64,000 nucleotides of DNA. Source: Podarcis gaigeae (Eukaryota). Under the pieces are notes generated by a model that saw nothing but the letters and a program-made list of their open reading frames with translations, was not told where the DNA came from and made no database searches. Position 1 is the first letter of the stretch, and the number at the start of each line of letters is the position of its first letter. A program made the translations under genes and the position numbers. Positions 10,241 to 59,236 of the stretch are shown one piece after another. The DNA lies in assembly GCA_964106915.2 (NCBI GenBank), contig OZ066919.1; one strand, given 5' to 3'.

Positions 10241-11311
10241 ATGGGAGCCAGTAGATTAGGGTTATTTTCATACTCATCCAGTCTGTTCCACACAATGAAT
10301 CTTAGTAGTGGACTGCAAAACTCTTTTATTTATTAATAGGATTTCTAACACACTCTTTATCAAGTAAAAAATAAAATAAAATCCCAGGGCCAGGGACATA
10401 CAAACTAATAAAATATATTCACAGATGAAAATTCAGCAGGGCAGCTAAAACAGTGAGTCAGGACTATAGGCACCTGCAATTTAAGCACCACTCTTAAGTA
10501 ATAAATGCCTGGGCAAGCTCAGTGGTAATCTAGGATTGGAACCTGGTTGGGGTCGCTTCCAGATGACCTGTTTACTGAGCATTCCTCCTTACTTGTTTGC
10601 ACTAAGTTTCCAGGGAGGTTAGATGGCATTGAACATTTGTTCTGATTTGTTTGTGGGGAGGTTATACCATGTGGCATCAAACAGTTGTTATCCCACACTT
10701 TCCAGTGCATTTTCCTGTCACTTTCCTTATCACGAAAAGTCCAATATTGGGGGCAGTGGGTTTCTTGAACTAGATGGCCAAATCAGCTTTCATTGGGCCA
10801 CCCGAATTTGCCAGTATGTGATTGAAAACAGTGCTAGTCTGGAAATGCCCAAAGTCAGATATTGGTTGATGTTCACACAGAAGGATCAGTCATTGTTATT
10901 ATTTATTATTTATTACATTTCTATAGAACCCTTCATTTGAGCATTGCGGGGCAGTTTACAATATAAAAACGCAAGAATACACAACATAGTAACAAGCAAA
11001 ATGGTTTGCTTTAATAGTGGTCTGTTTGACAGAAGGGATGGCAGCAGCACGTTTAATGAAAAGTTGTGACAAAAACTGCTACCTGCAATAATTAACTGGC
11101 CGTTACGTTGCTCCTGGTGTGTTGGGAGGACAGCATTCCTCTCGTCCTCAGTTCATGCTTTGTATTTTTTATTTCCCCCCTATTCTTTTCCCACTGTGAT
11201 GGTTTCTCTTCTCCCCTTCCCTTTTTTTTCACCCCCAGCATGAATCAGGACATCAGACCTATTTCCTGGTGAAACTTTAGATGACCTGTATCTGCAGCCT
11301 CTGTTTTTAAA

Positions 11312-11664
11312 ATGGCAAGTGCTACTTTGCGCCATGGAATGACCATCACTGGAGCTATCCTGCTGGTGACGGGGACTCTCTGTTTTGCTTGGTGGAGTGA
11401 TGGTGAGATGGGAGCCGCCCCATCTAGCAGTGAGCCAAAGATCATGCCTGATGGAGAGGTCGGACCAGTGGCAAGCTCTTCTTCCTCATCTAATGCACTG
11501 CTCAGGTCCATAAGCTTCTTCTGCTGTGGAATTGGCGGTCTCCTCCTCCTTTTTGGCCTTCTGTGGTCAGCCAATGCAGGGATAATTTCTCGCCGCTATC
11601 AGTACCATTTTTCAAGGGACCTTCATTACTCCACCGTGGAGCCTCTTGAGAAACAGACCTGCAG
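11312..11664 (+). CDS. TMEM61: TMEM61 first coding exon (both TM helices)
   Basis: AAAATGG Kozak context; donor AG|GTCAGC, phase 2. Confidence 0.9.
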
Positions 11665-13374
11665 GTCAGCACAATCTTTGCGCCCAAACCTGATGGGGGT
11701 AGATTGATGCTCAGCTAAAACTAGGATACAGCGCCTGTGATATACAATGATAAAATATTGCTTTTTGGTATCATTTTTTTCCATTTGCTGCTTTTGATCT
11801 ACAGCGTAGCATCTTCCCTGGCTAGCACTGTTTCAAGGTGAACTCTGCGATCTCAGTATATTGTTGCTTCCCACACATAAACCCTTTACCCATTGGAAAA
11901 GAAAAGGGAAGTCAAATGATCAAAGGTTATGTGAAAGTTTCACCTGTATACAAGCCATGTTTGCTTAGCAAAGCACAATGGAAAAAGTAATCGCTGCGGC
12001 CTGGTGATGATCAGTGGCCCATGAAATGCACATTAACCAGTGGGAATGTGGTCAAGTTTGACACTTGATATTATAAATATTGCGAAAGGGCACAAGTCTC
12101 CGTAATTTACGGGTACTGCTAAAGTGCTGGAAGCATCTGATGCAGGGACAAATTCTTCACTTAAATTGATGTTGTATACATTTATTAGTATTTCTTGCAC
12201 TTCCTGTCTGTGTAATTCTAATATATCCACAGAAGGTACATTCAACTAAAGAAAATTCTCTTGTGCTTTCTCTATACCCAGTGCTTTTTCCGTAAAAAAA
12301 AAAAAAAAAAAGTTTAGGGGTACTTTCATTTTCCAACTCTCATTTTCCTACTCAATGAGGCCAAAGTTAGATTCACAAAATGTCTAGGGATATGCATTCC
12401 CCCAGAAAAAAGCACTGTCTATACCTATTCATGTGGGTTTTCCCACAAGAGGCAGCGATGGCCAACAACTTGGATGCCTTCAAAAGAGGGTTAGGCAAAT
12501 TTGTGGTGGATGCAGCTGTCTGCCACCGCTAACCCTGATGCCTGTGTCCCATCTCCACTGTCAGAGGCAATAGGCTTCTGAACACCAGTAGCTGGGAACT
12601 GCAGGAAGGCAGACTGCTCTGGTGTTCAGGCCCTGCTTCTGGGTTTCCCACCAAGCATCTGCTGAGAACTGGATGGGCCATTGGCCTGATCCAGCACGCT
12701 CTTCTTATGTTCTTATATAGTGCACAAGAGACCCACAGTGCAATCCTGTATATACCCACTAAGAAATAAGGTCAATAAGACGCATATCCCAGGTAAGTGT
12801 GCAGCTGCATTTACACGCCACGTGTGACATTGTCCTTGAGGAACACATGAAAAGAGGGTGGTGGGTTTTTTTCCTTTTTCTCTCTTCTCTGACTTTTTCT
12901 CTCTACATTTGACATTGAGACTTCAAGAGTAGTAGCTACAGCTGTGGAGTGGAAAGATTGCTAATTGTACTAAAATTATTAATCTTGCTTGCATATGCCC
13001 TTGCAAACCTTATTTTGCATCAAGATACCTCTTTTAAAAAATAATGATTAATTGGTTTTTATTTTGCCTTGGTTTGTTTCAGCACCTGGGATCCAAGCAG
13101 TATTCCCTCTTATGAAGAAGCCTTGAATTGTCAGCCTGCTGAAAACGTCCCAAACAGCACACAGCCCAACAGCCTGAAGGAAAGCAGGCCCCCCTTGTAT
13201 CAAGTGGTGGACGAAAATGACACACGCCATGCCGGCCGTAGGCGCAGTTCCTCTGATAGCGTTTTGTTCCGGAATATTCTGCCGAGGCTGGAGTCAGCAT
13301 CGTGGGACGACTCGAGCGTCGCCTGCGACACTCCGCCCCCTAGCTATGAGAGTGTTCGCTCGTGCGACGGATGA
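11312..13374 (+). CDS. TMEM61: Transmembrane protein 61; join(11312..11664,13083..13374), 214 aa
   Basis: GTLCFAWWS, LLRSISFFCCG.GGLLLL.GLLWS, YHFSRDL.Y.TVE, IPSYEEA and PPPSYES match TMEM61 as recalled; in-phase GT-AG intron; lies upstream of BSND as in human. Confidence 0.92.
12279..12417. mobile_element. hAT-type MITE in TMEM61 intron
   Basis: TIR CAGTGCTTTTT / AAAAAGCACTG; perfect 8-bp TSD TCTATACC. Confidence 0.85.
12448..12716 (+). mobile_element. CR1 LINE 3' end fragment
   Basis: Degenerate ORF2 end (A.NLDAFKRGL.KF) and CTTATGTTCTTAT tail. Confidence 0.7.
13083..13374 (+). CDS. TMEM61: TMEM61 last coding exon (cytoplasmic tail with PY motifs)
   Basis: Acceptor TTTGTTTCAG|C; AG+C=Ser keeps frame; TGA at 13372-13374. 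Confidence 0.9.
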
Positions 13375-13775
13375 TCTTGGGATCGGGTTCACCTTTCTTG
13401 GGAATCTCTAGATTACTTTTGAGCTGACACCTGCCTTTTTCTTAAATTAGTTATTTGTGGCAAGCTGGAGTGGAAAAGCTAAATAGCTATTAAAAATACG
13501 AACAACTGTTTTGTCTTTTCGTAGGGGTCCCTGCCAAATTGTCGGAGGTCAGTCTCGACATTGCTTTTTTTTAGTGTGCGACTAATGTGAATACAATGCT
13601 TCATGTGCCGAGAATGATGCTTCAGAAGCACATACTAAGTGCATAGAAAATTCAAACTTCCGCTAAATGAAAGAACTGCTTTCAAAGGTTACAGGCCTTT
13701 AAGGACAGTACACAGCGAATTTGGGTAACCAGGCTGTGGATATATGACATTTTGAAAATGTTCTGAAATGCTCTT

Positions 13776-13781
13776 AATAAA
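13776..13781 (+). terminator. Candidate TMEM61 polyadenylation signal AATAAA
   Basis: First AATAAA seen after the stop, with U/GU-rich sequence downstream; ATTAAA alternative at 13489. Confidence 0.45.
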
Positions 13782-14188
13782 ATTACTATCAATTCTGAAT
13801 TGTTTTATATGCATAGCGGGGATATAGGCAAACATGTTTGAGTTCTGAACACCAAAGGCAAAATCCAGTGCATGCAATGAAACTTCCTCTTCCTCTCCTG
13901 TGGCCTCCAGCTTCTCAAAATCACCTCCAGAGGGTTGGGAACCTTGTGAAGCAGATTTCTTTTGGGGAGGGTTCGGGGGAAGGAGAAAGAAAGGAAATGG
14001 AAGTCCCATGGCATTGGTACAACTCTGCTGGATTACAACCCCATGTATTGTGGCAGAGAAAGGTTTCCTAAGTAGCCCCTAGAAGCCATTCTTTGATTAT
14101 ATTTGGCCAAACGTTACTCTTAATGAGGTCATACTTAATGGGGACAAAATTCAGTTTCAAGCCAGCATCCCAGTCTTGAATATAAATA

Positions 14189-14430
14189 CAGTGGTACCTC
14201 AGGTTACATATGCTTCAGGTTACATACGCTTCAGGTTACACACTCTGCTAACCCAGAAATAGTGCTTCAGGTTAAGAACTTTGCTTCAGGATGAGAACAG
14301 AAATCGTGCTCTGGCGGCACGGCAGCAGCAGGAGACCCCATTAGCTAAAGTGGTGCTTCAGGTTAAGAACAGTTTCAGGTTAAGTACCGACCTCCAGAAC
14401 GAATTAAGTACTTAACCCGAGGTACCACTA
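14189..14430. mobile_element. Tc1/mariner (Tigger-like) MITE, copy 2, inverted relative to copy 1
   Basis: TA-CAGTGGTACCTCAGGTT ... AACCCGAGGTACCACTA-TA. Confidence 0.85.
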
Positions 14431-17400
14431 TACTATCTATCGAGACCACATTATCTTTCATAATTATGATGAGTCAATGGTCATCAGTAGGTCTGGGCTC
14501 TGGAGTGTTTCTGGGGGTGCATTGCAAATGTTGCTGATGAGTTACTGAGAGAGTTTTTGTGAGCTGGGATGGAGAGGGTGGTGGTGTTGGTTTCAGTGGT
14601 TTTTATGGATATAGCTCTCCATGCAGGCAAGCAAGAGGCATTATCGTAGTTCAGAGACACCTCATCCAGGCAAAAGCAGGAGGATGCAGAGCAAGCCCAG
14701 TGAGAGGCATAGCCTGAGAAGAGGGCATGACTGGGGAAAGTCTCAAGGGCTGGCTAGAGAGGCCTTGGAGAGCTGCATTTAGCCCCTAGGCTGAGATTGC
14801 CCATCTATGCCTGAGGACATAGAAGTCTTTAATAGGCCCAGGGAAGGTGTGGGAGGGAAGACAATCCCCAATTCGTATTAGGATGGTTACTCATAAGTTA
14901 CCAAAGATAATATGCTACTTCTGCTGCAGAGGAAGAATCCCATGTCATCTGAAACATGGGGGGAAGGAAGAGGGCAGCAGGACTGCCTTCCCTGGAAGTA
15001 ACACGATTTAGTGGAACCACTGTGTGCATCTATATTTGGATTCTGTGAGGATCTAACAGATGAGAATGAACAGTTTATTTTCCTAGGTTTTTTTATGTTT
15101 AAAAAAGTAATTGTTACGGGGGAGTATTAGGACTGAGTCACATGTTTATTTTGAGGTGATAGAAGTCTTCAAGCAATGACTTTACTGCTTCATTTTCACT
15201 TGGGAAGTTATTTGTCTCAAATATTGCCCACATGAAAATCTCCGGCTAACTACGTAAAAGGAAACCGTTTAGAAATAACATTTTCTCTGATGACACGGTA
15301 ACTGGTGATTCTCACACAGGAGAAATTTCAATTTCATGTGAAGATGAGGTGGTCAAAATCTCAGAAGCAGGGGCTTTATCCTTTCCCAAACCAATTCCTT
15401 GAATCTTGGTAAGGAGAAGTTTTTTCTTCTTCTCTTAGCCTGCCTTATCTCTCTTCAACTCAGTTCCACCTATTACTCTCCTTTTTATTTCCCCCCAAAG
15501 TATTAACAGTAGTCTGTTTACCCTTAAGCTACAAAAGACCTCTGGACGTTTTCCAGTACTCTGTGCAAATACCTATTTCCTATTAATCTCCTTATTTCAT
15601 AAAATGTTTAATGACATTTATTTAGTCAGTGTATGGAGAAAGGATACACCAAGACTTCTGTGTTTTTACCAGTTGCAAAACAGGCAGGAATCCAACAGGT
15701 AAATATTTCTCAATTGCATCTCCATGCTGGCAAAAGAGGTTACTGTTGAATTTTTGCCTTTTCTACAATAGTTCACTCCTGATTCTAAAGTGTGACTGCA
15801 ATGGAAGTTCTGATATGAAGTATTTGGAAGTGGGCAGGCTGCAGTTTTGCTCCCAGTTAGCTGTGAACCCTTGCCCTGTCCTAGCCAAGACAGGAAAAGG
15901 CTAAGAGCCTGTTTGTGTCATAATCCTGGCTTTTGTGTGTTATGTGATCAGATGCAAACAACAAGAATCAATTACTGGTCATATAAATGGAAGCCATGAA
16001 GCTAGGCTACTGTGAGAAATTAAAATGGCAGCTACGCCTGAGTTATTGTTGACACCGCTCCCCACCAGATAAACCCTTGAGGACCCACAGGCGGATGAGG
16101 GAACCAGCCCAACAGAGGTCATGTTGTGAAGAGCCCCCTCCATCCAAGAGTTAACTGGGCAGGTGACAGGCAAGCATTCAATAGGTGAAACATCACTACA
16201 TCTCCACAGTATGAAAATAAAATCACCTGATCTGAATGTTGTTATCACACAGTTATTAAAGTACAGAGACTCTCAGAAACAAAGGTAGCAACCTTGTTCA
16301 GGAATTCAGAGCACAGGATGTCTGCTGCTGCTTTTTTTATTTTGGATAGGACACCATAACAAACTTTACTGATATAAAACCTGGTTTAATATTGTAAAAA
16401 GTAAGCTAGCGTGGGTGGCATAGCGCAATATTTAAGCCACAACACAAACCAATGAAACAGAACATGTGCTGTTGCTCCCACACTATGCCAAAAGGTGGTC
16501 TAAATGTTAAGAGAGAGAGAAGGAGAAAAAGATTCCCTCTGCTATACATAAAAATATAACCAATAGTTGTATGTTGATATAGTGCCTAAGAAGGGACGGA
16601 GTTCTCCATTTGCAGCCCTAAGGTCACTTAGCTCCATGGAAGACAATGCTGGCGTTGAATTGTCCTGAAGCCAAGAGCCACTTTAGAGAACAGAATTGTT
16701 CCTGTGTGTGTCTCAAGGGGGAAGTTGTAACCTTTTCGCATGACACCTTTTTCCCCCAAATGTTTGTTTACTAAATAGTGAAGAAACAAGAGATCGCTGT
16801 GAGGGATATAGACGGCCCAGCTATTCAGGTTTTCTTATGTCATCTGCTTGTAAATGTCAATTTGAGATAGTCCTCTCCCCTTTGCAACACCAACAATTGA
16901 GTGGTTACAGTACACTGCAACCATTGCTCCCCAGCCTGGAGAAGGTGCCTAGGTGATAATACTCCACAATGATTCCTTGTGTAAAGAAATTACGGGTGTC
17001 GTTGTTCAGTGTACTACTCAGCCCACCCCAACATTAGAAGCATAAGTATACCTTAGGTGGGGGTGCAAATCTATGAGGAAAGGTTAAGAAGGACAGCAAA
17101 AAAAAGCAAACTTTCCAACAAAAATTGCTCAGGCAAAAACAATTCCAAGCAAAGAATCCAGACTTTAGCAAATGGGATCAAAATTAAAGGTTTGAAGGCA
17201 AAAGAGGGGAGGGGGAAACCCCCAATGTTAAGAAGGAGTTGATTTGATTTTAAGAATTAGGTCAGTATGTATGATCAAACTGCCATGATGAGAAATGTGG
17301 ATTGAGTGGAGTGTGGCCGAATTCAGTAGGAAGTAAAGCAGCACTGAGTCTGCGGACATCTCATAATATGTGCACTCAGCTCACAAATCAACCCACGTTT

Positions 17401-17568
17401 ATGGCTCAGCCATGTTGGGTGGCTCTGCAGTGGATAGTAAATGTGGGTTGATTTGGGAGCCAAGCGTGAAGTTATCCTAGGATGCATCACTACCACATAA
17501 AAGACAGCTTGGATTACTCAATATTTGTAGCCTGCCAATTTTGCCACATAAAATAGAACCCTTACAAA

Positions 17569-17570
<2 letters not shown>

Positions 17571-17659
<89 letters not shown>
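17571..17659. repeat. (CT)n(CTTT)n microsatellite
   Basis: Read directly. Confidence 0.95.
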
Positions 17660-18134
17660 GCCTCAGCTTGAGGATTGCTTACAATAAATAACTGAAATTA
17701 TAATTCCTTAAGGGGCAAGGTGACACATACTAATGTTCCTTTAAGAAGTGCCTTCAGCAACCAAAGATCTGGCAAACTTCACATCTGGAACCCTCAAATT
17801 AAGTTTCAGGTAATTTGGGGAAAGGCAGCATTGTGTGCAGCGTGGTATTGTCTGTCACATGTTCGATCAATTCTTCCTTCAAACTAAAGAATAGGTTATG
17901 TGGGTGTTAGACAATGGATCTGGCAGCATCGGGAATGCAATTAAGTCTGGTATTTTTAGCAGGGTTGCACCCTTTTATTGGTTAAAGGGAAATATTCTAC
18001 TCGGAAATTAACTGCACACAATATTAGATTATCTTCTTTAATCTTTCCCCATGCTACCTAGTTAAATGTAAAGCACAATCCTATGCAAGTTTACCCAGAA
18101 GTAAAGTCTACTCTGTTTGATATTAGACCTTATA

Positions 18135-18580
18135 AAACCAGTTCTAAAGGATCTTCACTGGCTCACAATATGTTTTTGAGCATAATTCAAAGTGTTGGTG
18201 CTGACCTTTAAAGCCCCCAAAAGCCTTGGCACAGTATACCTGAAGGAGCATCTCCACCTCCATCGTTCAGCCTGAACTCCTCTGAGGGCCTTCTGGCGGT
18301 TCCCTTACTGCAAAAAGCAAAGTTACAGGGAACCAGGCAGAGGGCCTTCTCAGTAGTGGCGCCTGCCCTGTGGAGCACCCTCCCTTCAGATGTCAAAGAG
18401 ATAATTAACCATGCAACTTTTAGAAGACATCTAAAGGCAACCCTGTGTCAGGAAGATATAAAAACATAATAAAACATCAAACATTAAATATGTGTTGGAA
18501 GCCACCTAGAATGGCTGGGACAACCCAGCCAAATGGCCAGGGTATAAAACAACAACAGCAACAGCAGCAACCACAACCAC
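18135..18580 (+). mobile_element. L2 LINE 3' fragment
   Basis: Degenerate L2 ORF2 C-terminus ([25 protein letters not shown]); homologous to the 59177-59630 copy. Confidence 0.8.
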
Positions 18581-19127
18581 CTTATGCATCCATGAATAAA
18601 GGGCTGTCAGTGTTTTAATAGCCCTGCTCCTGTGCCTTTCCCCATTGTTTTGTCTCTCTATGAGGCAAGCATAACTTGTTTAATTTCTTCACTTTGGGCT
18701 GTTGCTCAGCGCTCAGGATCAGGGCCAGGAGAAAAGCTGGCAACCCTGACATGAAAGATGCCAAGCCAGTGAAATCACTTCTCTTCATCTGATTTACCAT
18801 CTCTAATTTCATTGAAAAGTTAATCCTTCTGCAGTAAAATTACATTAGTGCTTCAGAGACAGAATATAATCTCTTTGTAAAAAGCTGAAAAGGGGGAGGG
18901 GGAGGGGGACATCCGCACTTAAAACATGCTGGATTTTGCTAGTGATCATTTCAAATGAAATGGACTTTAAATGCAGCTCTGAAATTTATCAGGGATTCCA
19001 CATAAACCTAGCATGGATACATTTCCTGAGTGTGAATTTCATGCTCTTTATTCAGCTCATAGTAGCAATGAATGAATCTCCCCAAAACGTCTAGCTATAT
19101 ATACATTAATTACACAATGGGCCCTGC

Positions 19128-19329
19128 GTGATTGGCTAATTCCGGGCTGCTCCTGTAGGCCAATCAGTTTGCGGATTCACCTCCTCCAGAAGCCTGATTG
19201 GCTGCTCCTGCAGGCCAATCAGGTCGCTGATTCACTTCCACCTGGAGCTGGATTGGGAAGCTCCTGTGGACCAATCAGACTGCTGCATTCTGGATCCTAT
19301 TGTTCTAGGATTCAGCTCAGTACATAACA
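19128..19329 (-). mobile_element. Probable LTR fragment with three tandem GATTGG...CCAATC units
   Basis: Reverse complement begins TGTTATGTACTGAG (LTR-like TG start); three imperfect ~55-65 bp repeats. Confidence 0.5.
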
Positions 19330-20024
19330 TTTCCCATGATACTTTACTCCTGATTTGTTGCTGTAATTATTGTTGAAAGCTCTCCTAACACTTTAGGATT
19401 GGTAATTCTTCAGTGGCTTGGAGGTGTTATGTCTGACTTAACTATCATGAAGATCAAGAGGATTTGTGAAACACTTTATGAAAACAGCTTTAAAGGGGTG
19501 GTACAAATAGTTCTGGAATCCTAAATAATTATTACTCCTTTCTTCCTTGACTGAAATATCCAGCTAGACCAGCCTCATCAACAATAATTCCCATGCTTCC
19601 TTACTGAAAGGGAATGTGCGACAGCCATTTGCAACATAAACTGTGAGAAGGGAAACCCCAGATCAAGTGGAAAATAATTATAGGAGCGTCTAATCTTGAT
19701 TTTTCAGCTTTCTGTGCAGAGGAGTGACTACTTCACACATTGCAAAGATGCCTCTTGTGGATCATGCACTCAGCCGGCAGCCAACTTTTAGGTTCATCGT
19801 GAGTTTCCTGCATTCCATTGTGCTGGATTACACACAATTTCAAGAAGCAAAAGTTCAAGAGACTTTTTAAGATAAGACTTTGCTTGCTTTTAAAACAGAG
19901 GATTAACCTTGCGGGAAACAAAGGACAATGACTTTAATTCCTTTGCCCTTAAAGTGATTCAGGCAAAATTTGGAAAAGATTTAAGGATGGATTTGCATAA
20001 CCTGTACTATGCCAAAGGGTGGCA

Positions 20025-20717
20025 TGGGGTGCTAGGGGACGGGTAGTACCTCTGGTGGGGGGCACGGCATGCTTCTTTTGTCTTCTTTTGGTCCCCACCC
20101 TGCATTCAGCTCTCACCTGTGGCTCCTGGAAGCAGCCCGCATGCGACAGCAGCCCCAGGAAATGGTTTCAACTGGCCAGCTAACCAGGTGAGGATACCCG
20201 ATTGGCCCCAAACCCTTGGTGAGTTAGGGATTTCCTTTGCATGTGAAGACAGGCTCTGGCAGACTGAGTGAACAAGACCAAGAGCGGTCCAATGGTCAAG
20301 AAGGTGGCATCTTCATGCACTATAGAGGAAAGTGAGGTACAGATGGGGGTTGTCAACCTAGGAAGGTAGCCCATCTAAGAGAAGGAAAACTCTGATCCTA
20401 AACCTCCACTTCCTTGTGGGACATCTTCGGGAGAAGAAAAGGCTAAGGAGTAAACCTTACACAATCAGGAGCAGAGTCCCTAAGATGGTTGGATGGCGCC
20501 TTGTACACATCCTTCAGGCAATTCCTGCAGCCAAGCTGGTGCCAAAGGTATTGCTCTGCTTTCCTTTGTACCACACCAGCAAGCCCAGGACCTATATGCA
20601 CACTGCCCATGTTTGTGTCCTGGGAAGGTCACTTCAGTGCTGCTAACACATTGGTTTGACTTCACCCCTGGAGGCACACTCCATTGTCTCTCGAGACAGG
20701 CAGATGCCAACAACTAC
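20025..20717 (+). mobile_element. Non-autonomous retroposon, RTE-like bipartite type (tentative)
   Basis: GAGAAGGAAAACTCTGA..AAACC motif recalled from RTE 5' regions; ends in GATGCCAACAAC short-repeat tail; no recognisable protein. Confidence 0.45.
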
Positions 20718-23287
20718 ACCAAAGTCTGTATCCCCCACCCTACGTGGCATAGATGTATTGCTTGAGATAGGATACACATATGATATACTGTGCTGAAAAA
20801 TGCTACACATGTACAACTCAAATGCAATCCCCAAATAAAAAAGCTGTAAACGTAGCAAAGCAACCTGAAGCAACTGAAGTGCAACTACTGCTGTTATTGA
20901 CAGTTGCTTACCACCCACTTGAATCTGGTTATAAACTTAGCTGCATCATTGATTGATTTTGCTTGTATGAAATTCCTTTTATGATGTCTCTTTCCTAAGG
21001 TGCATTAGGTGGTTTGTTCACCGCTTGATAACCTGGGACAGAGTGGTATGAAATGTGCAGGCACCTCAAGGGCTGGAGAGAGGCCACAGAATCCATGATT
21101 CTGTGGAATTTCCATTTTTGGACACAAGCACACCACTGCATAACCAGAGGAACACTTGTGGAGAAGGCCTATAGCTTCCATGCCCTGCTTGCAGGCTTTC
21201 TAAAGCAGGGATTGGGAGTTTGTGGCCTTTCAGATGTTGCTGGACTCCTATTTCCATCAGCCCCAGATGTCCCCACTGTGGAAGGTCGTGTGGATCCAGA
21301 ATTGGCCTCCACAGTCACTTACGGACTCATTGTTAAAACCGTGTTTATGGAAGACAGTCTTACTAGGCTACGAGTGATCACCAAAGATAAGAAGATATCC
21401 AAAATCTGGAGGGTCATGGGTTTCTCACCCCTGTCTTAGAGGCGTATGTTTGGTCATGGTGGGATGGAAGATTGAGGAACACTTCACACATCAGCTTATG
21501 TTGGCTCAGTTGCATCCATCTTTTTAAAAGCTGGACTTCCCAGACTGCTCTTCAGGGTCTATTGCGTATCTAATGTGTGCTGTAAAAGCTGTGAGTAATG
21601 TCAACAGCTGATAATGGTGTGTTTCAATGACTACTGGAGCAAGATTCATGCCTCCTCTGGTGTTGACTCTCTCAAGAGCTATTCTTGTTAGAGAAGGATA
21701 TTTCCACTGGGGGCTAGTAACTGAAGCCAAAGCTCCAGAAATATGAACTGAAAATATATGGATGGCCAAATAAAGATAACTTCTTAGGAGCTTGGGGAGT
21801 TATCTTACTGGGGCCTTTCTACATTTACCTCTATGGTGGAACAGTTGCTGTGTGATCAGATTCTTTTAAGAGTGAATTTGTAGCTGATTGTCTGCCCCTT
21901 TGGTCATATGCCACTGCTATTAGAGTGAATGTGGGGGTTTTCTTTCCACACTAATGGAGGGTTTTGCCTGAGTTGAGGGAAGTTCCATGGTTGTCATCGC
22001 AACTCTTACATACCCCTATATTCATCCAGACAGTAAATACTGGAAGTTATGAGCATGAGCAGGGGGAATAGCCCTTTCATGGCTTAAAACAAATTTATGC
22101 CTAGTATTCCAGGATTCTAATCTTGTGGGAGTATGGGACATTAGAAGAGGAACTACATGTCTTTGGTGAACCTGGTTATTGTGATGAAAAGTTGTTTTCT
22201 GCAGCTTACAATTGCTGTCACAAACAGTGCTTGGATTCAGTAGCATCATCTTCATAGGCCATGCCTTTCCTCTAAACTGAGCTCACATACTGACATCTTG
22301 CACTGGTCAGAGGGAGGTGGTGTAAAACAGATGTTTTCCAAGCCATACATACCAACCCCCTCAACCCAGAAACCAGGATGGTGCTTGTTTACATACCGCA
22401 CAAATGAAGATGTTGGGGATTCATGACAGATCTTTCAGAAAAGTCAGGGCTTTTTCGTGGTAGAAAAGAAATGTGTGTTTGTGAGTTCATTGTTCTGGAA
22501 GACTCGGCTGAATACTGCTGACACCATGTGCCAGCATGGCAAAATATCTGGAAACTTCTCCCCCAGCAATTATATCTATAATTGGTAAGTTTAGAAATGC
22601 CCCAAATCAGACAATTTGTCCATCCAGCTCAGTATCATTGAAACTGACTGGCCGTGGCTCTCCAGAGTTTTCCCCACTGTCAATGTAGGTTGCTAATAAA
22701 CTGGAAGGGTATATATGCACTTGAAGAATCAAGAAACAATAAGAAGAAAGGTTTGGGGGGAGGGTTATTTAGGTTTCTGATATGTGAACAACTTCCATTT
22801 TTGAAGGTTCATAATTTAGGCTGGCTTTCTTACATTAGGCTAGTTTTCCACAGCACTTTTGGTGGAGCAGCTGTGTAAAATGCCCACTAGATGGCAACCT
22901 ACTCCCAAAACTTTTTCCTTCTACAAATCTCAAAGGTTTTTAAGGAAGGGGGGGGGGGGACCCAGCAGAATATTATCAGCTGCTTGAGGAGAAAAGGCCA
23001 TAACCTAAGCAATCTCCCTTGCCTCCAAGCCCATTCACCTAACCATAACGTAAAAAAAAAAAAAAATCCTTATTATTTCTGATTTCACTAATATATCCCC
23101 TGGCAGGTGGGAAACAGGATACGAGCAACTGCATTGCAAAGCCGTGTAGAGGCAAGAAAAGGGTGGCGATTTTTCATTCATCCTGGAAGAAAATTGTAAA
23201 AATGGACTGATTACTAAAATCCTTCATATAAACTCAAAACTAGCAAGCGCCAACAAGAACTGTGAGAATGGTCCCCAAGGCAGGCAG

Positions 23288-23289
<2 letters not shown>

Positions 23290-23333
<44 letters not shown>

Positions 23334-23341
23334 TTTTTTTT
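23290..23341. repeat. (CA)n microsatellite plus poly-T
   Basis: Read directly. Confidence 0.95.
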
Positions 23342-24462
23342 GGAAGGATGAATAAAAACTTTCACTCTATCAACATGCATTAGCAGACTATTAAAGCTGG
23401 GCAAATGACTTATAGTGGAATCCTATGCATGTCTACTCAGAAGTAAGTCCCATTGAATTAAACAGGGCTTCCTCCTAGGTAAATTAGTACAGGGAATGCA
23501 GCCTGAAGTTTGTCAATATAATTGTAAATGAATGATTTTGAGAAAGCGCTTTAAAGGGTGGGGCTAAGATTGACATTTGATAGTGAATGGCTCATCTCCA
23601 TGAGGGATTATATTTATCCTGCCCCACATACCTGAGTTATGAGACTCTTGCCTCTGTGAAAGCAATGGGGTGGGGAGGTGGGGGGGGGGGGTGACAGGAG
23701 CAAAATGTAGCCATTGTGATAACTGGTCTGTCTGAAAGAACACACTGGGGGGGGGGGGAATAAGTGATCTTGTGAAGCCTCCTTCCTATTTGTCTTTCAT
23801 AAGCAATAATTTCATTTTCCAGAGCCTGGGGAAACCACCACTGTCATCCGTGCAAGATTGCACACTGCGAAGGCCATGCCATCTGACAACGCACAGAGGC
23901 AGGAAGGTTATTGTCCCACCAGAGAGTCCCCTTATGGTCTAGACAAAGGACCGGACTGTGGAGCAGTCACTTGGCTCTCTGGGTACTGTTTTCCTAATTC
24001 ACCAGTGAGCCTCTGAAACCTGGCAACTGGGATCCGGTTCTAGAAGGGTCCTAAAACCTCCCCTCCTGAGTCCACACCCCTTTGGCAAAGGCATGCTCAG
24101 CTTTTGTGCTGTATATACCTAGGGGGAAGGTTATTGTGAAGTGTCCCTGGGCAATGTTACTCATGTGTGAATGGAAGGATCTTGTTTGCATTCATTACAA
24201 ACCCATTAAAAGCTGGCTGGCTGAGACCTGGGCAGGACTGGTCTGAAGGTTGCAGCTGACACTCGTCCCCTTGCTGGCTCTCTGCACCATCTCCTCACAG
24301 TGCACCAGACTGAGGAGGCCTTGTGTGGGTCAGGGACAGGTGAAGGGCTGCCCAGCCTTTCTGGACTCCCCACCACCACCCACACCTTTCCAGCACAAGT
24401 TCTTTCCATGAACTAGCCTGCCCAGAAATTACCTCAATTTCAATCTCTCTTCCTGGATCCCA

Positions 24463-24639
24463 ATGGCTGAAGAGAAAACTTTCCGCCATGGGCTCATCGT
24501 CTTGGGAGTTTTTCTGGTGATGATCGGAATGTTCATCATGAGTGTGGAGAAGCCCCAGATCTACATCACCTTTTGTACCTTAGGGGCCTTGGTTATTGCT
24601 GCGGGGATCATTTGGAGCATGTGTCAGTGCTACCCAAAG
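24463..24639 (+). CDS. BSND: BSND exon 1 (TM1, TM2, C54/C56)
   Basis: ATG to CCAAAG|GTAGGA, 59 codons. Confidence 0.95.
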
Positions 24640-27600
24640 GTAGGAAAAAAGTCTACTTTTCTTTTTTCTAAAGAATGTGCCTTCAACAGTTGCACTTTGG
24701 GGGGTATCAAACTCAGAATTCCCAATGTTGGATAGAAATTAAGTGGTTTCCAGCTGTAATGCCTTAAGAGAATATGGGAAAAAAAGGTTTAGAATTGGGT
24801 CAATGATTTATTGATAAGGATTTGCTGAATTAACAATTTGAATTGGAATACAAAAAAAGGGAGGTATGAGGAGGTCTGGGAAATAAGTTAATGGAAATAA
24901 GTAATGGAAATTTTGCGTGTTTTTTAATTATTTTCATTTTTGTATTTCTGTTATTTTCTTTTTTCTTTTTTGATTTTTACTGTATTATTATTGAAAACTT
25001 TAATAAATATTCTTTAAAAAAAAAAACAACAAACTCAGACTTCCCAAGAATATATTTGGGCTCTTGGAAACTGCGGGATTATATGTCCCCTACTCTTTTT
25101 TGAGCTTGTTAGCCTTTTAAGAAGTAGAAACTTAAAAATATTTTACTTGCAAAGCAATCAATTTTTTGGTATCTGCTCGATTAAGAAATTACTTTACACA
25201 TTGGTTTCCTTACAGTTGCCACAAAAGTAATGATGCCGTCGCAGGATAGATATTAGAATGGTGCCACAATATAATGCAGTGGGAACTGTAGAAAGAGAAA
25301 TTTAGGTAATGGCAAATCTAAGGCTGTTCCCTGTTGGAGTTGCAGCTTGGATCTTCTTTCTGAAAATCTAGGATTTGATTGAAGACACTGTTCGGAATGT
25401 AAAAATAAAAATAAAATGCCTTTCTTCTAGGGAACCCCTACATCTCCTTGGAGGTAGGTAAGAAAGAATCACTTTGCCCAGGGTGGACTGCCTCCTGAGC
25501 TTTATTTGAGATCCAAATGATACATCACATTTTCTTAATTAAATTCAGTGTTTGTGCATATGTTTGTGTGTAGCTGCTCATTTGATGGGAGGAAATAACC
25601 CCCTTGTTCCAAGGAGTTATCTTCCCTTACTTCCCTGCTTTCCCTCCCCAGATCAGAGTTGTTTCTGTTGATGTGGAGTCTGAGAAGTTTCTTGTAAAGA
25701 ACACTGCTGCTTCATCTGTTCAAAATGAGATTCCCGAGAAGAACAGGTATGTTTGCGGAAACCAAGCCTGTAAGCTTCAACTCAACAGTCTGTAATCTAC
25801 TTTTTAATTAGAATACAGTACTTGCCTGTGCATATTGCAAACTGTGTTCTGTAGAGGGACAAGGTCAACGTCTGGAAACGCTGGCACAGGGCAGTGAATT
25901 GCACAATTTAAGTGTATTTTTATACAGGAGAAAAGCGGTGTCTTTAGGGGAAATATAAAGCTCCTCAGAGGTATGTGTGTTAGTGTGTAAAGCATGGAAC
26001 AGCTTTGGAGACCCATGCATAGGAAAGCAAAAGGCGTTTACAGCACAATCCTATACTTCTCTGCTTAGAAATAGATCTCATTGAGTTCAATGTGGCTTAC
26101 TCTCAGATGTGTGTATAGGATTGCAACCTCCATCTCATTTCAGTGTCTAGCCCTGCTATATATAATCCAATCCAGAAAAAGAATGTGGGCCTCCTTGGGA
26201 TTCATTCTGCACTGGCCATAAGAACAGCAGCTCCTTTGGCCTTGTCTCTCTCGGCTGTGCAGAAGCTATAACTGGTCAATCAAGATAAAATTATGGCAGC
26301 TTAAAAGAGCTTCTTCTCCATCTTCCACCTCACATCCAAGCTTCTTCAGAACAGTGCCTCCCTCACCCTAGAGATGGATAAATCCTGGTGAAATGGTATT
26401 TGTAGGAGGTGGTCTCCTGCAGAGTGCAGTGACAGGTTGGGTATATATGGGGTGGATCTACACACAGGGGAAAACCGCTATAAATAAGTCATAAATTAGA
26501 TCCGTTATAATAAAAGAAAGAAAAAACCCTATGGAAAATCGCATATAAATTTTTTCTGCTCTCTGGCACCATCTGGTGTTGCATGTTTATAGCACATTCA
26601 AAAGTTGTTTCTTTACTAATGTAGCTGAGTCCCAGGGGTGAGATAATCTTTGGTCCCGAGCTGTATAGAGCTTTGTACCAAGTTCATTGGTCATTTCTTC
26701 CCTTTCTCTCAACATTGACTAAGGGTAAGACCACAGCCTGCTGCCAGAAGGCCTATTTTATGTGCTTCATAAGCAATTGTTTTTCTGATTGAAAACTTGG
26801 ACCCGGCACCAGCCTACTGTGCAGTAGCCCAGCCTCAGAGGCGTCCATGGGCCATTCCTTTCCTGGCTATGTCATTTACTTGCTCATATCTCCCTTCCTA
26901 CCACATTCCATCCACCCATCAACTTCCTTTAAACAGGTTTCTTAACAGCGCAAGGTCATTTTCCATAATACTCCAACTGCCAACAACAGAAAGGAAAGTG
27001 AAACTAAAGTAGCTGAAGGCAGCATAGCCCTGGCATACAGACTGATGGGTTTTGTATGTCCCTTTCTCCTAGTCATACAGGAGGGAATGGAGGACAGGTA
27101 AGAAAAGCAGGTCTACTGACAGCTCATATCCAGATAACGAACAACTGCAACACGCTTAAGAGGAAGCAAACTTGTCTAGAGAAATGCTGGTCCTCTGAAG
27201 CTGCTCAAATTTCTGAATCAGCAAATAATCAGATTCCTGTCCCCTGTTAATAACAGATGTAACAAATCTGGTGAAGTAATATTCCACTTTCTCGTGTTGT
27301 TTGCTCAGTTCCCAGACACCTTACACCAGCCAGAAAGAAGCTGAAGTCTATGAGAAAAGCCTGCCGTCTTACGAACAGATCCAGATGAAAGTGGCAGGTG
27401 CAGAATCTGTGGGTGTTCTGTCTGCTCCAGTCCCACCAGTCAGGGCAGAAGGATGTACCCAGCCTGTTGTACAGGCCAAGGCAGAGGTCCACAGGGATTC
27501 AGAAAGCGATGGAGACTCCTGCAAGGACCCAACGTCCCAGAAGGACGCTGCAAGGTTGTACCGGTGAGTAGCTCATGCGGTGCGTTCAGGGGCTGGTTTG

Positions 27601-29083
27601 AATAGCGCACCACCCTGAACCTTATGGTCACCTTATGGTGATTTCTGTTAGGCACTCTGGATAGAGAAAAGTTTGCAAAGGCAGGATGGTTGTCAAATTA
27701 TATAAATATTAGTTGTTGTATGCATTTTCATTGCTTGATTAAACAAAATGAATAAATGAACATCTGCATAAAACAATGTTACTAATGCAGGTGTCAGAAC
27801 CGACACAATCTTTGAAAATATATAATATTCTATGTTGTAAATTATATCCTTTTCTATGTGTGAGATATGGTGCAANNNNNNNNNNNNNNNNNNNNNNNNN
27901 NNNNNNNNNNNNNNNNNNNNNNNNNNNNNNNNNNNNNNNNNNNNNNNNNNNNNNNNNNNNNNNNNNNNNNNNNNNNNNNNNNNNNNNNNNNNNNNNNNNN
28001 NNNNGGGAGCTCCTTTCAAACTGAACAAAACTAAACAGGGGTCGGCCACTGTGACAAGATGATGTTGGACTAAATGGACCACTGGCCTGATCCAGAGCAA
28101 GGCTCTTCTTACGTTTATATGTTCTTTAATTGATTAATCTAACTGATTGGCAACATTAGTTGATTAATCTGTTAGATTAATCAGCTAATGTTACCATCCC
28201 CATAGAAGGTGGAGCTAAATATAAGATGCATGCTAGCTCTGTATCAATGAAAAGCCAACACAGTTTGTACTGCCCGGTGTTGTTCCTTCTAGTTAAAGCA
28301 GGCATCACAAGTGCAATACTCTCCAGGTGGAGTGCAACTCTTGTTAACTCAGACCATTGGGCATGCTGGTCGGGGATGATGGGAGTTGGGTCCAAGAACA
28401 TCTGGAGGGGACCACATTGGTGACTCTTGAGTTCAAGATCAAAACAATGCTGTTGGGCTGGCATGGTCAATAATATTTAATTTACCCTTAGAAACCAAGT
28501 TAATTAAACCAACAACAGCTGGTCATTCCAGAACCAGGGTGAAAAGCACAGCATCTGCCTAGCTTGATTTACTATAAACGTCCTAGTAGAAACACAAAAC
28601 AGCTCAACAATCAGCCTTGGAAGCTATGTCCTTCAATGAACCTTCTCTTTAAATTCTAGTGAGTCAGAAAAGTTTCCTAACCAGGCGCCACTGGCTTCTT
28701 TCCAAGAGGAAGCTGACGCCTCTTCCGTGGAATCTGCAGCCAACAGTCCATTTCTACAGAGGTGGGAAAATGTCTCGAAGCCTATGTCTCCAACAGAAAG
28801 CCAGCTCAGATTCAAGCTTCCTTCCTATGAAGATTTTGCCCTGATCGATTCCCTGACGGCAGAAGGTCAAGGTCAAAACAATGAAAGGATAACGGCGCCT
28901 AACCAAAGCCATTGCCCTATTCCTGCCCCCAGAAGAGATGGGGCATTGGCTACAGTAGGGCCTGAAGGACTGGAACACAGAGCTACGCATAATGTAGAAG
29001 AGGATGACATGTACTATGGAATAAAAGAGGGAGCAGGAGATGTCCCCTCATCGGTCGGTGCTGTCTCTGAACCAAAGGACTAA
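24463..29083 (+). CDS. BSND: Barttin, ClC-K chloride channel accessory subunit; join(24463..24639,25652..25746,27309..27563,28660..29083), 316 aa
   Basis: [13 protein letters not shown]...[13 protein letters not shown]-terminus, APLASFQ and DFALID motifs; 177- and 95-nt first exons as recalled for human; all introns GT-AG and in phase. Confidence 0.96.
24725..25029 (+). mobile_element. 5'-truncated poly(A)-tailed retro-insertion (L1-type 3' end) in BSND intron 1
   Basis: AATAAA at 25002, A-tail, 17-bp TSD CAAACTCAGA(A/C)TTCCCA at 24708-24724 and 25030-25046. Confidence 0.75.
25652..25746 (+). CDS. BSND: BSND exon 2
   Basis: CTCCCCAG|ATC ... AACAG|GTATGT, 95 nt. Confidence 0.9.
27309..27563 (+). 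CDS. BSND: BSND exon 3
   Basis: TTGCTCAG|T ... TACCG|GTGAGT; [14 protein letters not shown]. Confidence 0.9.
27876..28004. other. Assembly gap (129 N) in BSND intron 3
   Basis: Run of n. Confidence 1.
28660..29083 (+). CDS. BSND: BSND exon 4 (coding part)
   Basis: AATTCTAG|T; [17 protein letters not shown]; TAA at 29081-29083. Confidence 0.88.
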
Positions 29084-43898: not shown

Positions 43899-44254
43899 CC
43901 GGCACATCCACGCCCCAAAAAGATTTAGAGGAGCACATGGAAAGGCAAAGGGGAGGAGGGAAAGTCGAAGCGGCGAGAGAGAAGCGGGCGAAGGGGGTGT
44001 GCGCGCGCGCTGTGTGTGCAAGCGAGCTGTGGGATGCGATTTCCATTTGCTGTTCTTTCGCCCGCTGCAACTGCCGCCGCGCCAAGGGCAGCTCGCTCCA
44101 GTAGCCCGCTGAGTGCAGGGCCCCGCCGGGTTCTAGGCTCCGCCCGCGCCGGGTTCTAGGCGTCGCGCTGCGCTCCAGAGCCGAGCCTTTCCGCGTGCGG
44201 CGGCTTCTTCTGGGTCTCTGCCGACTCCCGCGTTCTTCCCAAGCGGGGGACACG

Positions 44255-44452
44255 ATGGGCGGCCGCTGCTTGCGCGCTCCGCTGCTGCTGCTGCTGTTCC
44301 TGCTGGGCGCGCTCTCTCCGGCTGCCGCCAACCTCGACGATCCGGACGAGGACGACGACGACCTGGTGGCGTCCTTCGCCTTCGAGGAGGAGAGCCAGGC
44401 CGACTTGGGGAAATACCGGAGCGGGTCCGCCGCTTTCCATCGGAGCAATAAG
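44255..44452 (+). CDS. PCSK9: PCSK9 exon 1
   Basis: [15 protein letters not shown]...AFHRSNK|GTGACC. Confidence 0.9.
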
Positions 44453-47400
44453 GTGACCGTGGCGGAGAGGAGGACCAGAGGGACTGGGAAGGCTCCGGCT
44501 CCGGCTGGTGCCCTTGCTGCTTCTCTCCCACTCGCCTTGCGGTGGCCTGGAGGTGCACCTCCCTCCTCCGAGATCTAGTTTGAGGACTCTGGTCGTTCCA
44601 GACAGGCGGGGTTTGGGGGGCAGCGAGAGCCCCTGGCTCCCGTGCAAAAGTAGCTTTACGCGCTGCAATGGAGCTTATTGATTATTTCATAAAATGTATA
44701 TATGCCTCTTGACTTCCGAAAAAGTCGAAGAGATTTTTTTTTTTAAAAAAAAGACCTTAGGCTGCAGTTGCCCGGGAGTATAAACTCCAGCGAATTCAGT
44801 GGGACTACTGAAGGGATTGGCAATTGTAAGGATTGCCCCATAGAGGCCCCGGGTTCGCATTGCACAGATGCTCGTTCCTTTGCTTGCGAGCAGGCAGCCC
44901 CTAAACCAGAGAGGATCTTGCCTGGCGCTGCCTTGCTCCCTGCCCTCTGGAACCCCCCCCCCCCCGCGCCCCACCTGAAGCCGAGTGTGCATTATTGGGA
45001 AGCTTTGCGTGCCTGCCTCCAACCCCAGCATCTCCAGGCAGGACCGGGAATGGTTCCCTGCGTGAAAACCCTGGAGGGCCGCTGCCAGTCCGTGCCGGCA
45101 ACACTACGCTAGAAGGGTCTGACTCAGTTTGAGGCGGCTTCCTAAATGGGCTGTGCTTTCTTGGGCGGGAAAGAAAATAATCTCTCTGCACATTGTCTCT
45201 TTGCACATGCCCCAGGCTGCTCTCATCATTATAGTCAGCTTCACTTGTTTCTGGGCTGGGCTCTGGCATTCAGAAACATTTCCATGGGAGGATCCTAGGT
45301 TGACTTGAAGCCCTGTTTCTGTGGCACTGCTTCCCCAACCCCTTCCCCTGTCTGGAAACTTGATTTCCCCATTTGGAAGGATACTAGTGGATGCCAAATT
45401 CAGACACCCGCGGTAGGTCAGGGCCTGGGATGGGCTTATTATTAGCATCATCATTCATGAAGCAAAGGCTCTTGTGGGAACAGGGACCCAATATCCCCCT
45501 CCCCCGTTATTTTGGATCTGTTCTGTTTCCTTATGAAGTCACCCCTCTATCCTCTACGGAACTGTAATGCTCTCTTTTTTGGGGAGGGGGGTGTTGTCTC
45601 TTGAAGAAGGGACATTTGAAATCTTATGTTCAGGCAGCAGGAGGAAGAGGCTTTGTGAAGCATCCATTTTAGGAAACTTGGCCAGGCACCAGTCATATAC
45701 TGTTGTAACATTGGGCATGCTTTAAAGGCATCCAGGATATTTTGCAACGAATGCACACCTGTTGCATTTTGCCTTCATTCAGAACCTCCTCGTCTACTGA
45801 AAGGTAGAGCTGCCTATTAAGATCTTGTGATCTCTGGTGACATTGGAACTATTCATTTTTTAAAATGCCTGCTCTGTCTTGCATGCAAATTGAAAGATCT
45901 GGCATCCAGGGAGCGTTTGGGGAATGCAGGGGTTGTTCTCCTGGCACTCTGCGTTGTATTGTCTTTCTTTTGTCTTTGGGGCACTTCTGAGCCTTGCCTC
46001 TTTTGAGTGGATGCCTTCGTGCAGTCCACCTGCGTTGCAAGGTCCAGCCATGATAGAGAATATCTGCTGCCTTGGCTTGTGCTGTGCAGGGTGCAAGGCT
46101 GACCTACCTCCTCTCACTGCTAGGGAGTGTCAGGAAGAGCCAAGGTGTTCTTGCAAATTCACTTCCCTGGCTTTTAGAGGTGAAGTCTGCCCAGCGATGA
46201 ACCAGGTGGTATGGTCAATACTGGAAGCAGTGAGCAGTCAGCATCTGGATTTCCTAGATGTGCATGCAGGTCTCTCCCCCCCCCCCCGGCTAAAAATAAA
46301 TAAATGGGTCACTGGATTTTGTTTTTGGCTTCTTTTAAAAAAAATCAGAACAGTGTAGGGGTGCGTGAAAAATGAAAAGAGAAAGGAACACAAATGGAGA
46401 TTGCTAAAAGATGGGGGGCATCTGTATGTGATCAGCGCAGGAGATCTGTAATTGGATCTCTCAGCATCTTAAGAAGCACTTATAGGTGGGGTGGGGAAAT
46501 GATTTGGATCAGGATTTAGTGCTGAAAGACAGGTTTTTAAACATTTCCCCCAGTTTAAATTTCCTCTACCCAACGCTGCCACAGAGACGAGAGAAAGCAC
46601 ATCCAGTAATGGTTTATGTCTTCCCCCCTCCACGCTCCACAGCTAATAGCAGCTTCTGGGAGGTGGGGATTTTAAATCATAGAAACAGTGCAGAGAAGAA
46701 GCTCCCCGGCCCCAGTTCACTCAGCATCCAACCCTGATCCAAATCGGAGGATGTGACTGCTTTTGAGCAAAGATGTTGGGAGGTCTGATTCTGGATCTCC
46801 CATGTCCCATTCATCTCAGCCCTGTGCGATTGACTAGAAGATGGGAGAATAATTTGTGCTGGATTCAGCAAGATTTGCTTCACAGAATTCCTGGTCCTCC
46901 CCTCTTTCTCATAGTTGCCTCTGATATACGGTACAGAATCAGCTTCCTTCTAAGGGGCAGATTATAGATGACATGGTGATGTGTGCAACAAACTCCCAAT
47001 TTATTTTTTAAAAAATAAAAAGCAGATTTTTAGTAGAGGTGTGTGAGCTTGTGTTTACGCAATCCTTTCTCTGCTGATCAGTTTCCTCACTCAAAATCTC
47101 TCCCTCTCCTGCTATTTCTTACACAAAGTTCCATACGCTTGTATCCATATCTGTGGGTGGAATTGCTAGGAGGGAGAGATTTTGAACTGGAAAAACGACC
47201 AGCACATCTTTCCTTCACTTTCAAAACCACATCAATTCTTAGTTGTCGTTCACTACGCAAATAAAGATTGTGCCTCATCTCTTTTGAGGCTATAAAGCAA
47301 AAATGATTTTTGGATAAATGCAGGGAACCCTTTCCAAGTTTTGCTCAATTTGCAGCCTGATGGAGAATTCTGGTGGACCTCACTATTTTGATTAGCCATA

Positions 47401-59174: not shown

Positions 59175-59236
<62 letters not shown>

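Follow-up and report, generated by a model that had tools for sequence, protein, structure and literature searches.

The window analysed here, a stretch of 64,000 nucleotides from contig OZ066919.1 of the Podarcis gaigeae assembly GCA_964106915.2, carries two real and adjacent genes, TMEM61 and BSND, the latter encoding barttin, which lie 11 kb apart on the + strand. The initial annotation, which correctly described the genes as adjacent and co-oriented, proposed that TMEM61 is a tandem paralogue of barttin and a candidate second channel accessory subunit of the barttin type. Our results point to one family, comprising TMEM61, barttin and a third protein, TMEM51; in TMEM61, a conserved two-helix hairpin would dock to a partner protein in the membrane, and PY motifs (L/I/PPxY) in the tail would recruit ubiquitin ligases. 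Taken as a whole, we consider this the best explanation, with a probability of about 0.65, and as part of it both genes are probably expressed. Both genes had been annotated before; the novelty lies in the family link and in the hypothesis opened by it.

TMEM61 consists of two exons, and its open reading frames (ORFs) and sequence place the coding part at 11312–11664 plus 13083–13375. Exon 1 (11239–11664, + strand, with the ATG at 11312 and the donor GT at 11665; 117 codons plus 2 nt) encodes the N-terminus, a first transmembrane helix (TM1), a loop of about 35 residues, a second helix (TM2) and a juxtamembrane segment that runs to EPLEKQTC; it reads MASATLRHGMTITGAILLVTG... in helix 1 and ...ISFFCCGIGGLLLLFGLLWS in helix 2. 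This exon matches Pfam PF15105 with an E-value of 3.6e-37 (128.4 bits, curated cut-off 30.1) and is 97% identical to the annotated TMEM61 of Podarcis muralis; the window is lacertid lizard DNA. The TM1 region (R7–S29, 11330–11398) contains R7, H8, G9, G14 and G21, which align to R8, Y/H9, G10, G15 and G22 of barttin, and the TM2 region (I67–S86, 11510–11569) contains C72, G75, G82, W85 and S86, which align to C38, G41, G48, W51 and S52. The intron (11665–13082) has GT..AG borders, is of phase 2 and splits a Ser codon (AG/C) 31 residues past the WS that ends helix 2. The coding part of exon 2 (13083–13375, with the stop codon TGA at 13373–13375) encodes a cytosolic tail with IPSYEE (13102–13119), PPLY (13189–13200), an RRRSSSDS stretch and PPPSYE (13333–13350). 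The PY motifs are accordingly located at 13102–13113 (IPSY), at 13189–13200 (PPLY) and within 13333–13350 (PPSY), and P203, P205 and Y207 are invariant across orthologues. Sauropsids, amphibians, coelacanth and sharks all retain the basic-then-serine stretch at 13232–13262, GRRRSSSDSVLF, in the form R-S-x-S-D-S-A-L-L; in placentals it is degraded, and its equivalent in a hagfish TMEM51-like protein is V-L-S-D-S. It looks like a basophilic-kinase phosphorylation site beside the PY motifs.

With regard to transcription, spliced RNA contigs from four public runs of two related species join the junction 11664/13083 (GT..AG) exactly. The contigs cover the TMEM61 exons but leave out the intron where it is unique, and one of them, 1156 bases long, spans both exons; they start near 11239 and stop at the donor. 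Since they join the exons and skip the intron, the splicing of TMEM61 is as in the model, and its transcript extends from about 11239 to about 13800. Within the intron, at 12316–12785, all four runs yielded short and very deep contig stretches (up to about 2900) with many loose ends; these stretches are copies of an interspersed repeat whose transcripts come from other parts of the genome.

BSND comprises four exons on the same strand (24463–29083). Exon 1 (24463–24639; 59 codons, phase 0; Pfam PF15462, E 2e-11) encodes TM1 (24484–24543), TM2 (24559–24618) and CQCYPK (24622–24639). Exon 2 (25652–25746; 31 codons plus 2 nt) ends in EIPEKN followed by AG, an end supported by gecko, Sceloporus and bird barttin fragments that read on likewise. 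The first T of exon 3 (27309–27563; Pfam Barttin, E 1e-4, profile positions 67–106) closes the AGT (Ser) codon across a phase-2 intron, 38 residues past WS; the exon carries the motifs TPY and LPSYEQ (27361–27378), has corresponding bird barttin sequence and ends in phase 2. Exon 4 (28660–29083; Pfam Barttin, E 7.5e-6, profile positions 163–222) opens with the T that closes CGT (Arg), contains LPSYED (28817–28834) and ends at the stop codon TAA (29081–29083). An assembly gap of Ns (27876–28004) falls in the noncoding intron 3 (27564–28659), 312 bases from the exon 3 donor and 655 bases from the exon 4 acceptor. As the gap is intronic, the frame closes over intron 3 (CG/T) and the modelled length of 316 aa is near the 318 aa of caecilian barttin, the gap has no bearing on the finding.

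Both proteins have two TM helices at the extreme N-terminus, seen as two hydrophobic segments per exon 1, followed by a long cytosolic tail, which the initial annotation had described as of low complexity, and a recount gave the same ungapped identities that it had listed: 7 of 18 positions in TM1 (T, R, H, G, G, L, G) and 7 of 20 in TM2 (I, C, G, L, G, W, S). Its description of the introns needs some adjustment. Phase 2, the split Ser codon and the distances from WS were all found as described, but the EK motif said to lie directly before the split is separated from it by three residues (QTC) in TMEM61 and by one (N) in barttin, and IPSYEE and LPSYEQ, said to follow at once, are located 6 and 17 residues further on, respectively. 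Barttin also has an additional phase-0 intron after CYPK, which is absent from TMEM61.

The TMEM61 set consisted of 161 sequences from squamates, birds, turtles, crocodilians, amphibians, coelacanth, sharks, a chimaera and mammals, and the barttin set of 36 orthologous exon 1 fragments including a shark and cyprinids, the profile made from the latter being without mammalian or amphibian hairpins; conservation and Pfam scans covered 44 TMEM61 orthologues and 19 barttins. All residues of the barttin hairpin signature (R8, G10, G15, G22, C38, G41, G48, W51 and S52) are present in the TMEM61 of the window, eight of them are at least 85% conserved across the 44 orthologues, and the shared signature clusters loosely on a single face of each helix. 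Conservation of the shared residues in other vertebrates, a check named by the initial annotation, was also borne out: nine positions (R8, Y9, G15, G22, C38, G41, G48, W51 and S52, in barttin numbering) are at least 85% conserved in both families. The annotation had further stressed that TMEM61 holds the equivalents of R8 and G10, two disease positions of barttin. Both are indeed found in this TMEM61, and the Arg is 95% conserved in the family, but G10 is replaced by Cys in placental TMEM61. In total, the TMEM61 hairpin contains 21 invariant residues.

Profile-profile comparison using hhalign placed TM1 on TM1 and TM2 on TM2, in the register that had been aligned by eye, with a probability of 38–45% (P about 3e-4); the probability is low because the 35-residue loop of TMEM61 needs to be bridged. 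With the loop columns removed, the score was 36.2 and the probability 91% over 48 columns. The cognate helix pairs scored 21.9 and 26.4 (the latter for TM2–TM2), compared to 9.5–14.3 for non-cognate forward pairs, 8.5–16.3 for column shuffles within blocks and a maximum of 21.8 in 150 shuffles with the glycines fixed. Column shuffles (8–16 versus 36) were dropped as the null for hhalign as being too lenient; reversed and swapped controls reach 24–27. When the barttin exon 1 hidden Markov model (HMM) was applied to TMEM61s, the matches fell in two collinear pieces, and the coelacanth TMEM61 scored above all 2000 shuffles.

A number of results weigh against common ancestry. Against the real hhalign score of 36.2, the structured controls gave 27.3 (reversed barttin), 23.9 (block-reversed) and 25.8 (helices swapped), roughly two thirds of that value, so that the profile-profile comparison, although it returned the register seen by eye, does not stand clearly above them. 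TM1 of TMEM61 versus reversed barttin TM2 scored 24.0, on a level with a true pair, because the pattern G......G..CF reads alike backwards, and this shows how far chance can reach with glycine-heptad helices. The barttin HMM gave the TMEM61s a median of 7.5 bits (maximum 14.9), whereas reversed sequences gave a median of 3.7 (maximum 12.0), and for shark TMEM61 the score was not significant. A TMEM61 profile run against 1.84 billion proteins retrieved no barttin at E ≤ 1e-3. In Pfam, barttin exon 1 matches many unrelated membrane families (E 5e-4 to 0.1) better than it matches TMEM51 (two of 19 sequences, E 0.21), and none of the 19 matches TMEM61. In the tails, alignment is limited to PSYE and is not significant (P 0.026 and 0.12), PSYE being a short ligase-binding motif that is easily evolved. 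Finally, the segments from TM2 to the intron (31 and 38 residues) do not align, and homology of the introns is for that reason unproven; that the phase-2 intron is shared is plausible.

In the pairing that scored 24.0, it is the reversed barttin helix 2 (24559–24618; G..I.LAGLTCF) that resembles TMEM61 helix 1 (11330–11398; GAILLVTGTLCF).

Neither the exons of the window TMEM61 nor any of the 44 orthologues match Pfam Barttin at E ≤ 10. However, the absence of such cross-matches says little, since the Barttin model starts only at helix 2 and lacks helix 1, and the HMMER filters drop weak matches. The ESM Atlas contained no look-alikes for barttin exon 1 and gave only weak leads for TMEM61, and its model of a TMEM61 was poor (predicted local distance difference test, pLDDT, 0.55). 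Two-helix hairpins superpose whatever their ancestry. A sequence search of the PDB found no barttin chain, and a CLC-K preprint from 2026 contained no barttin structure. Judged by the direct evidence alone, the chance of such a collinear double match would be a few per cent, which is suggestive but not decisive.

The likeness to barttin could be due to chance or convergence, with TMEM61 being a relative of TMEM51 only, glycine-heptad hairpins and PY motifs recurring in numerous small membrane proteins and the adjacency of the genes being coincidental. The structured controls approaching the real score, the 12 bits reached by reversed TMEM61, the limitation of tail similarity to a short linear motif and the language-model neighbours of TMEM61, which are TMEM252, TMEM171 and TMEM139 and not barttin, all speak for this explanation. 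The comparison of barttin with a hagfish TMEM51-like protein speaks against it.

TMEM51 is the closest relative of TMEM61. More than half of the TMEM61 orthologues (23 of 44) also match Pfam TMEM51 (PF15345), and those of coelacanth, caecilian and turtle do so collinearly (residues 6–163 to profile positions 5–161 of 237) at 26.4, 29.1 and 25.9 bits. The collinear match runs through both helices and the long loop between them into the juxtamembrane part and the first PY motif, and as it also exceeds the curated cut-off of 25.5 bits, TMEM61 is plainly related to TMEM51. For the window TMEM61 itself the match is weak (E 0.12 for exon 2), and a 97%-identical Podarcis protein gave E 0.044. Weak but repeated Pfam cross-matches of TMEM61 were also seen to other small and little-studied membrane proteins of vertebrates, namely TMEM171 (best E 2.3e-4), TMEM252 and Mtp/LAPTM, and its language-model neighbours, all with scores under 0.9, include TMEM174 in addition to TMEM252, TMEM171 and TMEM139; there may be a broader set of membrane proteins with PY motifs.

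Searching the 1.84 billion proteins with a profile made from TMEM61 only gave 45 matches at E ≤ 1e-3, of which 44 were TMEM61 and the last, with E 4.4e-4, was a protein named 'TMEM51-like' (P0232) from the hagfish Myxine glutinosa. P0232 matches the entire TMEM51 model (E 2.3e-14), and its first 100 residues exceed the cut-offs of both TMEM61 (31.8 bits, cut-off 30.1) and TMEM51 (26.2 bits, cut-off 25.5). All nine positions shared by TMEM61 and barttin are present in it, and its helix 2 (FC..G.LL.AVGIIWS..Q) is identical to the barttin consensus at 13 of 19 positions. BLASTP against lizard barttin exon 1 gave 32.7 bits (E 8e-8) with both helices in register across a 32-residue gap. The Smith-Waterman score was 70, whereas the best of 5000 block shuffles scored 57 and reversed controls 29–30. 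With the barttin HMM, P0232 scored 30.2 bits (E 2.3e-11, as a single comparison) and 0.6 bits when reversed, while its first 100 residues scored 33.2 bits, the maximum among 5000 shuffles being 14.0; hhalign gave a probability of 96% (P 3.8e-9, 51 columns). It should be underlined that P0232 was chosen because it resembles TMEM61, without reference to barttin; the multiple-testing burden thus amounts to the 45 matches only. Its long loop and its matches to two Pfam families speak against a chimera in the gene model. Since the same hairpin region links barttin to P0232 and P0232 to TMEM61 and TMEM51, the three proteins are supported as one family. On the other side of the balance, P0232 was the one TMEM51-type sequence in the bridge comparison, and the bridge thus relies on a single predicted hagfish protein.

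Whether the relation between TMEM61 and barttin goes beyond chance thus receives a two-part answer from the sequence comparisons: marginally so by direct comparison, and yes via TMEM51 and the hagfish intermediate. Moreover, in all three families both helices are collinear and in the same register, the same-strand tandem layout is kept from caecilian to lizard and a phase-2 intron splits a Ser codon at a similar place in both genes. Chance or convergence as the source of the barttin likeness appears improbable to us, and common ancestry of TMEM61 and barttin is likely, more so than the composite explanation of which it forms part. The ancient duplication proposed by the initial annotation is therefore retained in its main point, common ancestry, but the nearest relative of TMEM61 is TMEM51 and not barttin.

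The synteny data concern the age of this relationship. The caecilian Rhinatrema has the layout of the lizard: barttin (318 aa) lies 1.6 kb beyond TMEM61 (202 aa) on the same strand. Sharks and a chimaera were found to have TMEM61, and a shark and cyprinids (teleosts) to have barttin; because both occur in sharks and in bony vertebrates, the split between them predates the jawed-vertebrate radiation. The synteny check named by the initial annotation thus confirmed the tandem layout in the caecilian, but not in the shark Mustelus, where no other gene lies within 10 kb of TMEM61. TMEM61 and BSND probably go back to a single gene of early vertebrates that encoded a small membrane protein, and their same-strand adjacency would be the trace of an old tandem duplication before cartilaginous and bony vertebrates split. 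The ancestral protein would have had a short cytosolic N-terminus and a two-helix hairpin, with the signature R-[YH]-[GC]..G......G in the first helix and FC..G......G..WS in the second, followed by a disordered tail in the cytosol that carried PY motifs. Barttin would then be the most derived member, its loop having shrunk from about 35 to 5 residues and CQCYPK and an extra intron having been gained.

We know of no function for TMEM61 or TMEM51. Barttin cut after residue 72 still suffices for ClC-K to function, and the presumed binding site of barttin on the channel is formed by helices B and J (PMC4188032). The WW domains of Nedd4 recognise LPxY and PPxY motifs, and Nedd4-2 targets ClC-Ka/barttin (PMC2824488). 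In humans, ionocytes of the airway and thymus are marked by TMEM61 along with FOXI1, ASCL3 and CLCNKB (PMC10161739, PMC11558144). By analogy, the conserved TMEM61 hairpin may dock in the membrane to a partner protein, as barttin residues 1–72 do with ClC-K, and the two PPxY and one IPxY motifs of its tail may bind the WW domains of NEDD4-type ubiquitin ligases. Such binding could determine how much TMEM61, together with its partner, is present at the surface of FOXI1-type ionocytes or intercalated-like epithelial cells. We infer that TMEM61 is a small PY-motif membrane adaptor or accessory protein of ionocyte-type cells, and prefer this to a role as ClC-K subunit. One point weighs against an indispensable role of any kind: mouse Tmem61 is annotated as a long intergenic non-coding RNA (PMC6969532).

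In its strong form, the functional proposal of the initial annotation makes TMEM61 a second accessory subunit of the barttin type, or a competitor, whose hairpin binds ClC-K or another CLC protein and alters its trafficking or gating. The signature shared with barttin, including disease positions R8 and G10 in non-placental TMEM61, agrees with this proposal, as do the sufficiency of the hairpin region (barttin 1–72) for ClC-K function (PMC4188032), the listing of TMEM61 with CLCNKB and FOXI1 as an ionocyte marker (PMC10161739) and the adjacency to BSND in lizard and caecilian. However, TMEM61 is without the E3/K5 N-terminus, the 5-residue loop and C54-Q-C56-Y-P. The N-terminus of barttin is needed for ClC-K activation and palmitoylation of barttin is required for function, as the titles of two papers cited in PMC6427064 (the latter Steinke 2015) report. 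In addition, the residues on the outward faces of the helices, each set invariant in its own family, are not the same (for example TLCFAWW versus MFIMSV), G10 is Cys in placental TMEM61, TMEM61 has no Pfam Barttin match and our literature search found no TMEM61 interaction data. Mouse Tmem61 is reported as non-coding, and yet mouse ClC-K/barttin works (PMC6969532). Since the activator features of barttin are absent, a ClC-K role is not the default for TMEM61; together with a rodent that seems to do without the protein, their absence makes a second ClC-K subunit unlikely. Equally doubtful, or only a shade less so, is the broader form of the idea, in which barttin is a specialised member of an old two-helix PY-motif accessory family and TMEM61 a second or competing subunit of a CLC or another anion transporter in FOXI1-type ionocytes. 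The functional proposal as first worded is left without support.

Least probable among the explanations considered, by a little, is that TMEM61 is a free-standing adaptor or decoy for NEDD4 ligases of the NDFIP type, with no dedicated channel partner and a hairpin that is a mere anchor: two PPxY and one IPxY motifs conserved across tetrapods, coelacanth and sharks, weak Pfam cross-matches to PY-bearing proteins (Mtp/LAPTM in 8 of 44 orthologues, TMEM171 in 4 of 44) and the binding of PY motifs by Nedd4 WW domains (PMC2824488) would fit, but a mere anchor needs no 21 invariant hairpin residues over more than 400 million years, and these residues indicate a specific contact within the membrane.

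In a full-text literature search no paper relating TMEM61, TMEM51 and barttin was found, co-mentions being as neighbouring genes or in gene lists; Pfam clans, PANTHER and Ensembl paralogy were left unchecked. If the three proteins are one family, the barttin hairpin, which suffices for channel function, has two uncharacterised cousins, and TMEM61 is then a concrete candidate for regulating ion transport in ionocytes and in cells of the intercalated type. Single-nucleotide polymorphisms of the BSND/TMEM61 locus that have been linked to kidney disease severity (PMC6969532) could then be read with both genes in mind. Kinship thus gives TMEM61 a testable role and does not imply the same channel as for barttin.

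The remaining features of the window lie around these two genes. Downstream of BSND, a PCSK9-like proprotein convertase gene occupies 44195–57613 (+), with an exon from 44195 that encodes a signal peptide and lies in GC-rich sequence (0.555 at 44–46 kb), an Inhibitor_I9 propeptide exon at 47738–47950 and catalytic-domain-like ORFs near 54171 and 57359; the order TMEM61-BSND-PCSK9 is presumably that of mammals. Simple repeats, namely (CT)n, (GT)n and a long trinucleotide run (poly-L/poly-N in ORFs), were seen at 17541–17687, 23240–23404 and 59062–59464, and an Rfam search of the window gave no match. In the sloth Choloepus, the RefSeq entry 'barttin isoform X6' (P0197) is TMEM61 in sequence, and its sole Pfam domain is that of TMEM61; it seems that one gene name was given there to both adjacent genes, which were merged, possibly through read-through transcripts.

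Among known systems, NDFIP1 and NDFIP2 are small polytopic membrane proteins whose cytosolic L/PPxY motifs recruit WW-domain ligases to membrane cargo; they have three helices and an N-terminal PY region. TMEM61 resembles them in carrying several cytosolic PY motifs on a small membrane protein, and none of the searches made showed a sequence relationship. With TMEM51 (PF15345), TMEM61 shares the architecture and the C-terminal PPxY-E motif, but it forms a separate orthologous group, and TMEM51 is not in the window. From barttin, the ClC-Ka/Kb beta-subunit (PF15462), TMEM61 differs in several respects: the loop is about 35 residues long, variable and Ser/Pro-rich compared to 5 residues; the N-termini differ and vary in length, whereas barttin begins with MAEEK and has invariant M1, E3 and K5 before F7-R8; and C54-Q-C56-Y-P, invariant in the 19 barttins, is replaced by WS-[AV]K-AN.. 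with no Cys, the C54/C56 pair being what we take to be the palmitoylated positions. The phase-0 intron after helix 2 and a Pfam Barttin match are also lacking in TMEM61, and on the other helix faces the family-specific invariant residues differ (for example TLCFAWW against MFIMSV). Nonetheless, like barttin, TMEM61 has an N-terminal two-helix hairpin with both ends cytosolic, a tail with PY motifs and a phase-2 Ser-codon intron shortly after helix 2, is found in ionocyte-type cells according to the literature, and neighbours BSND on the same strand.

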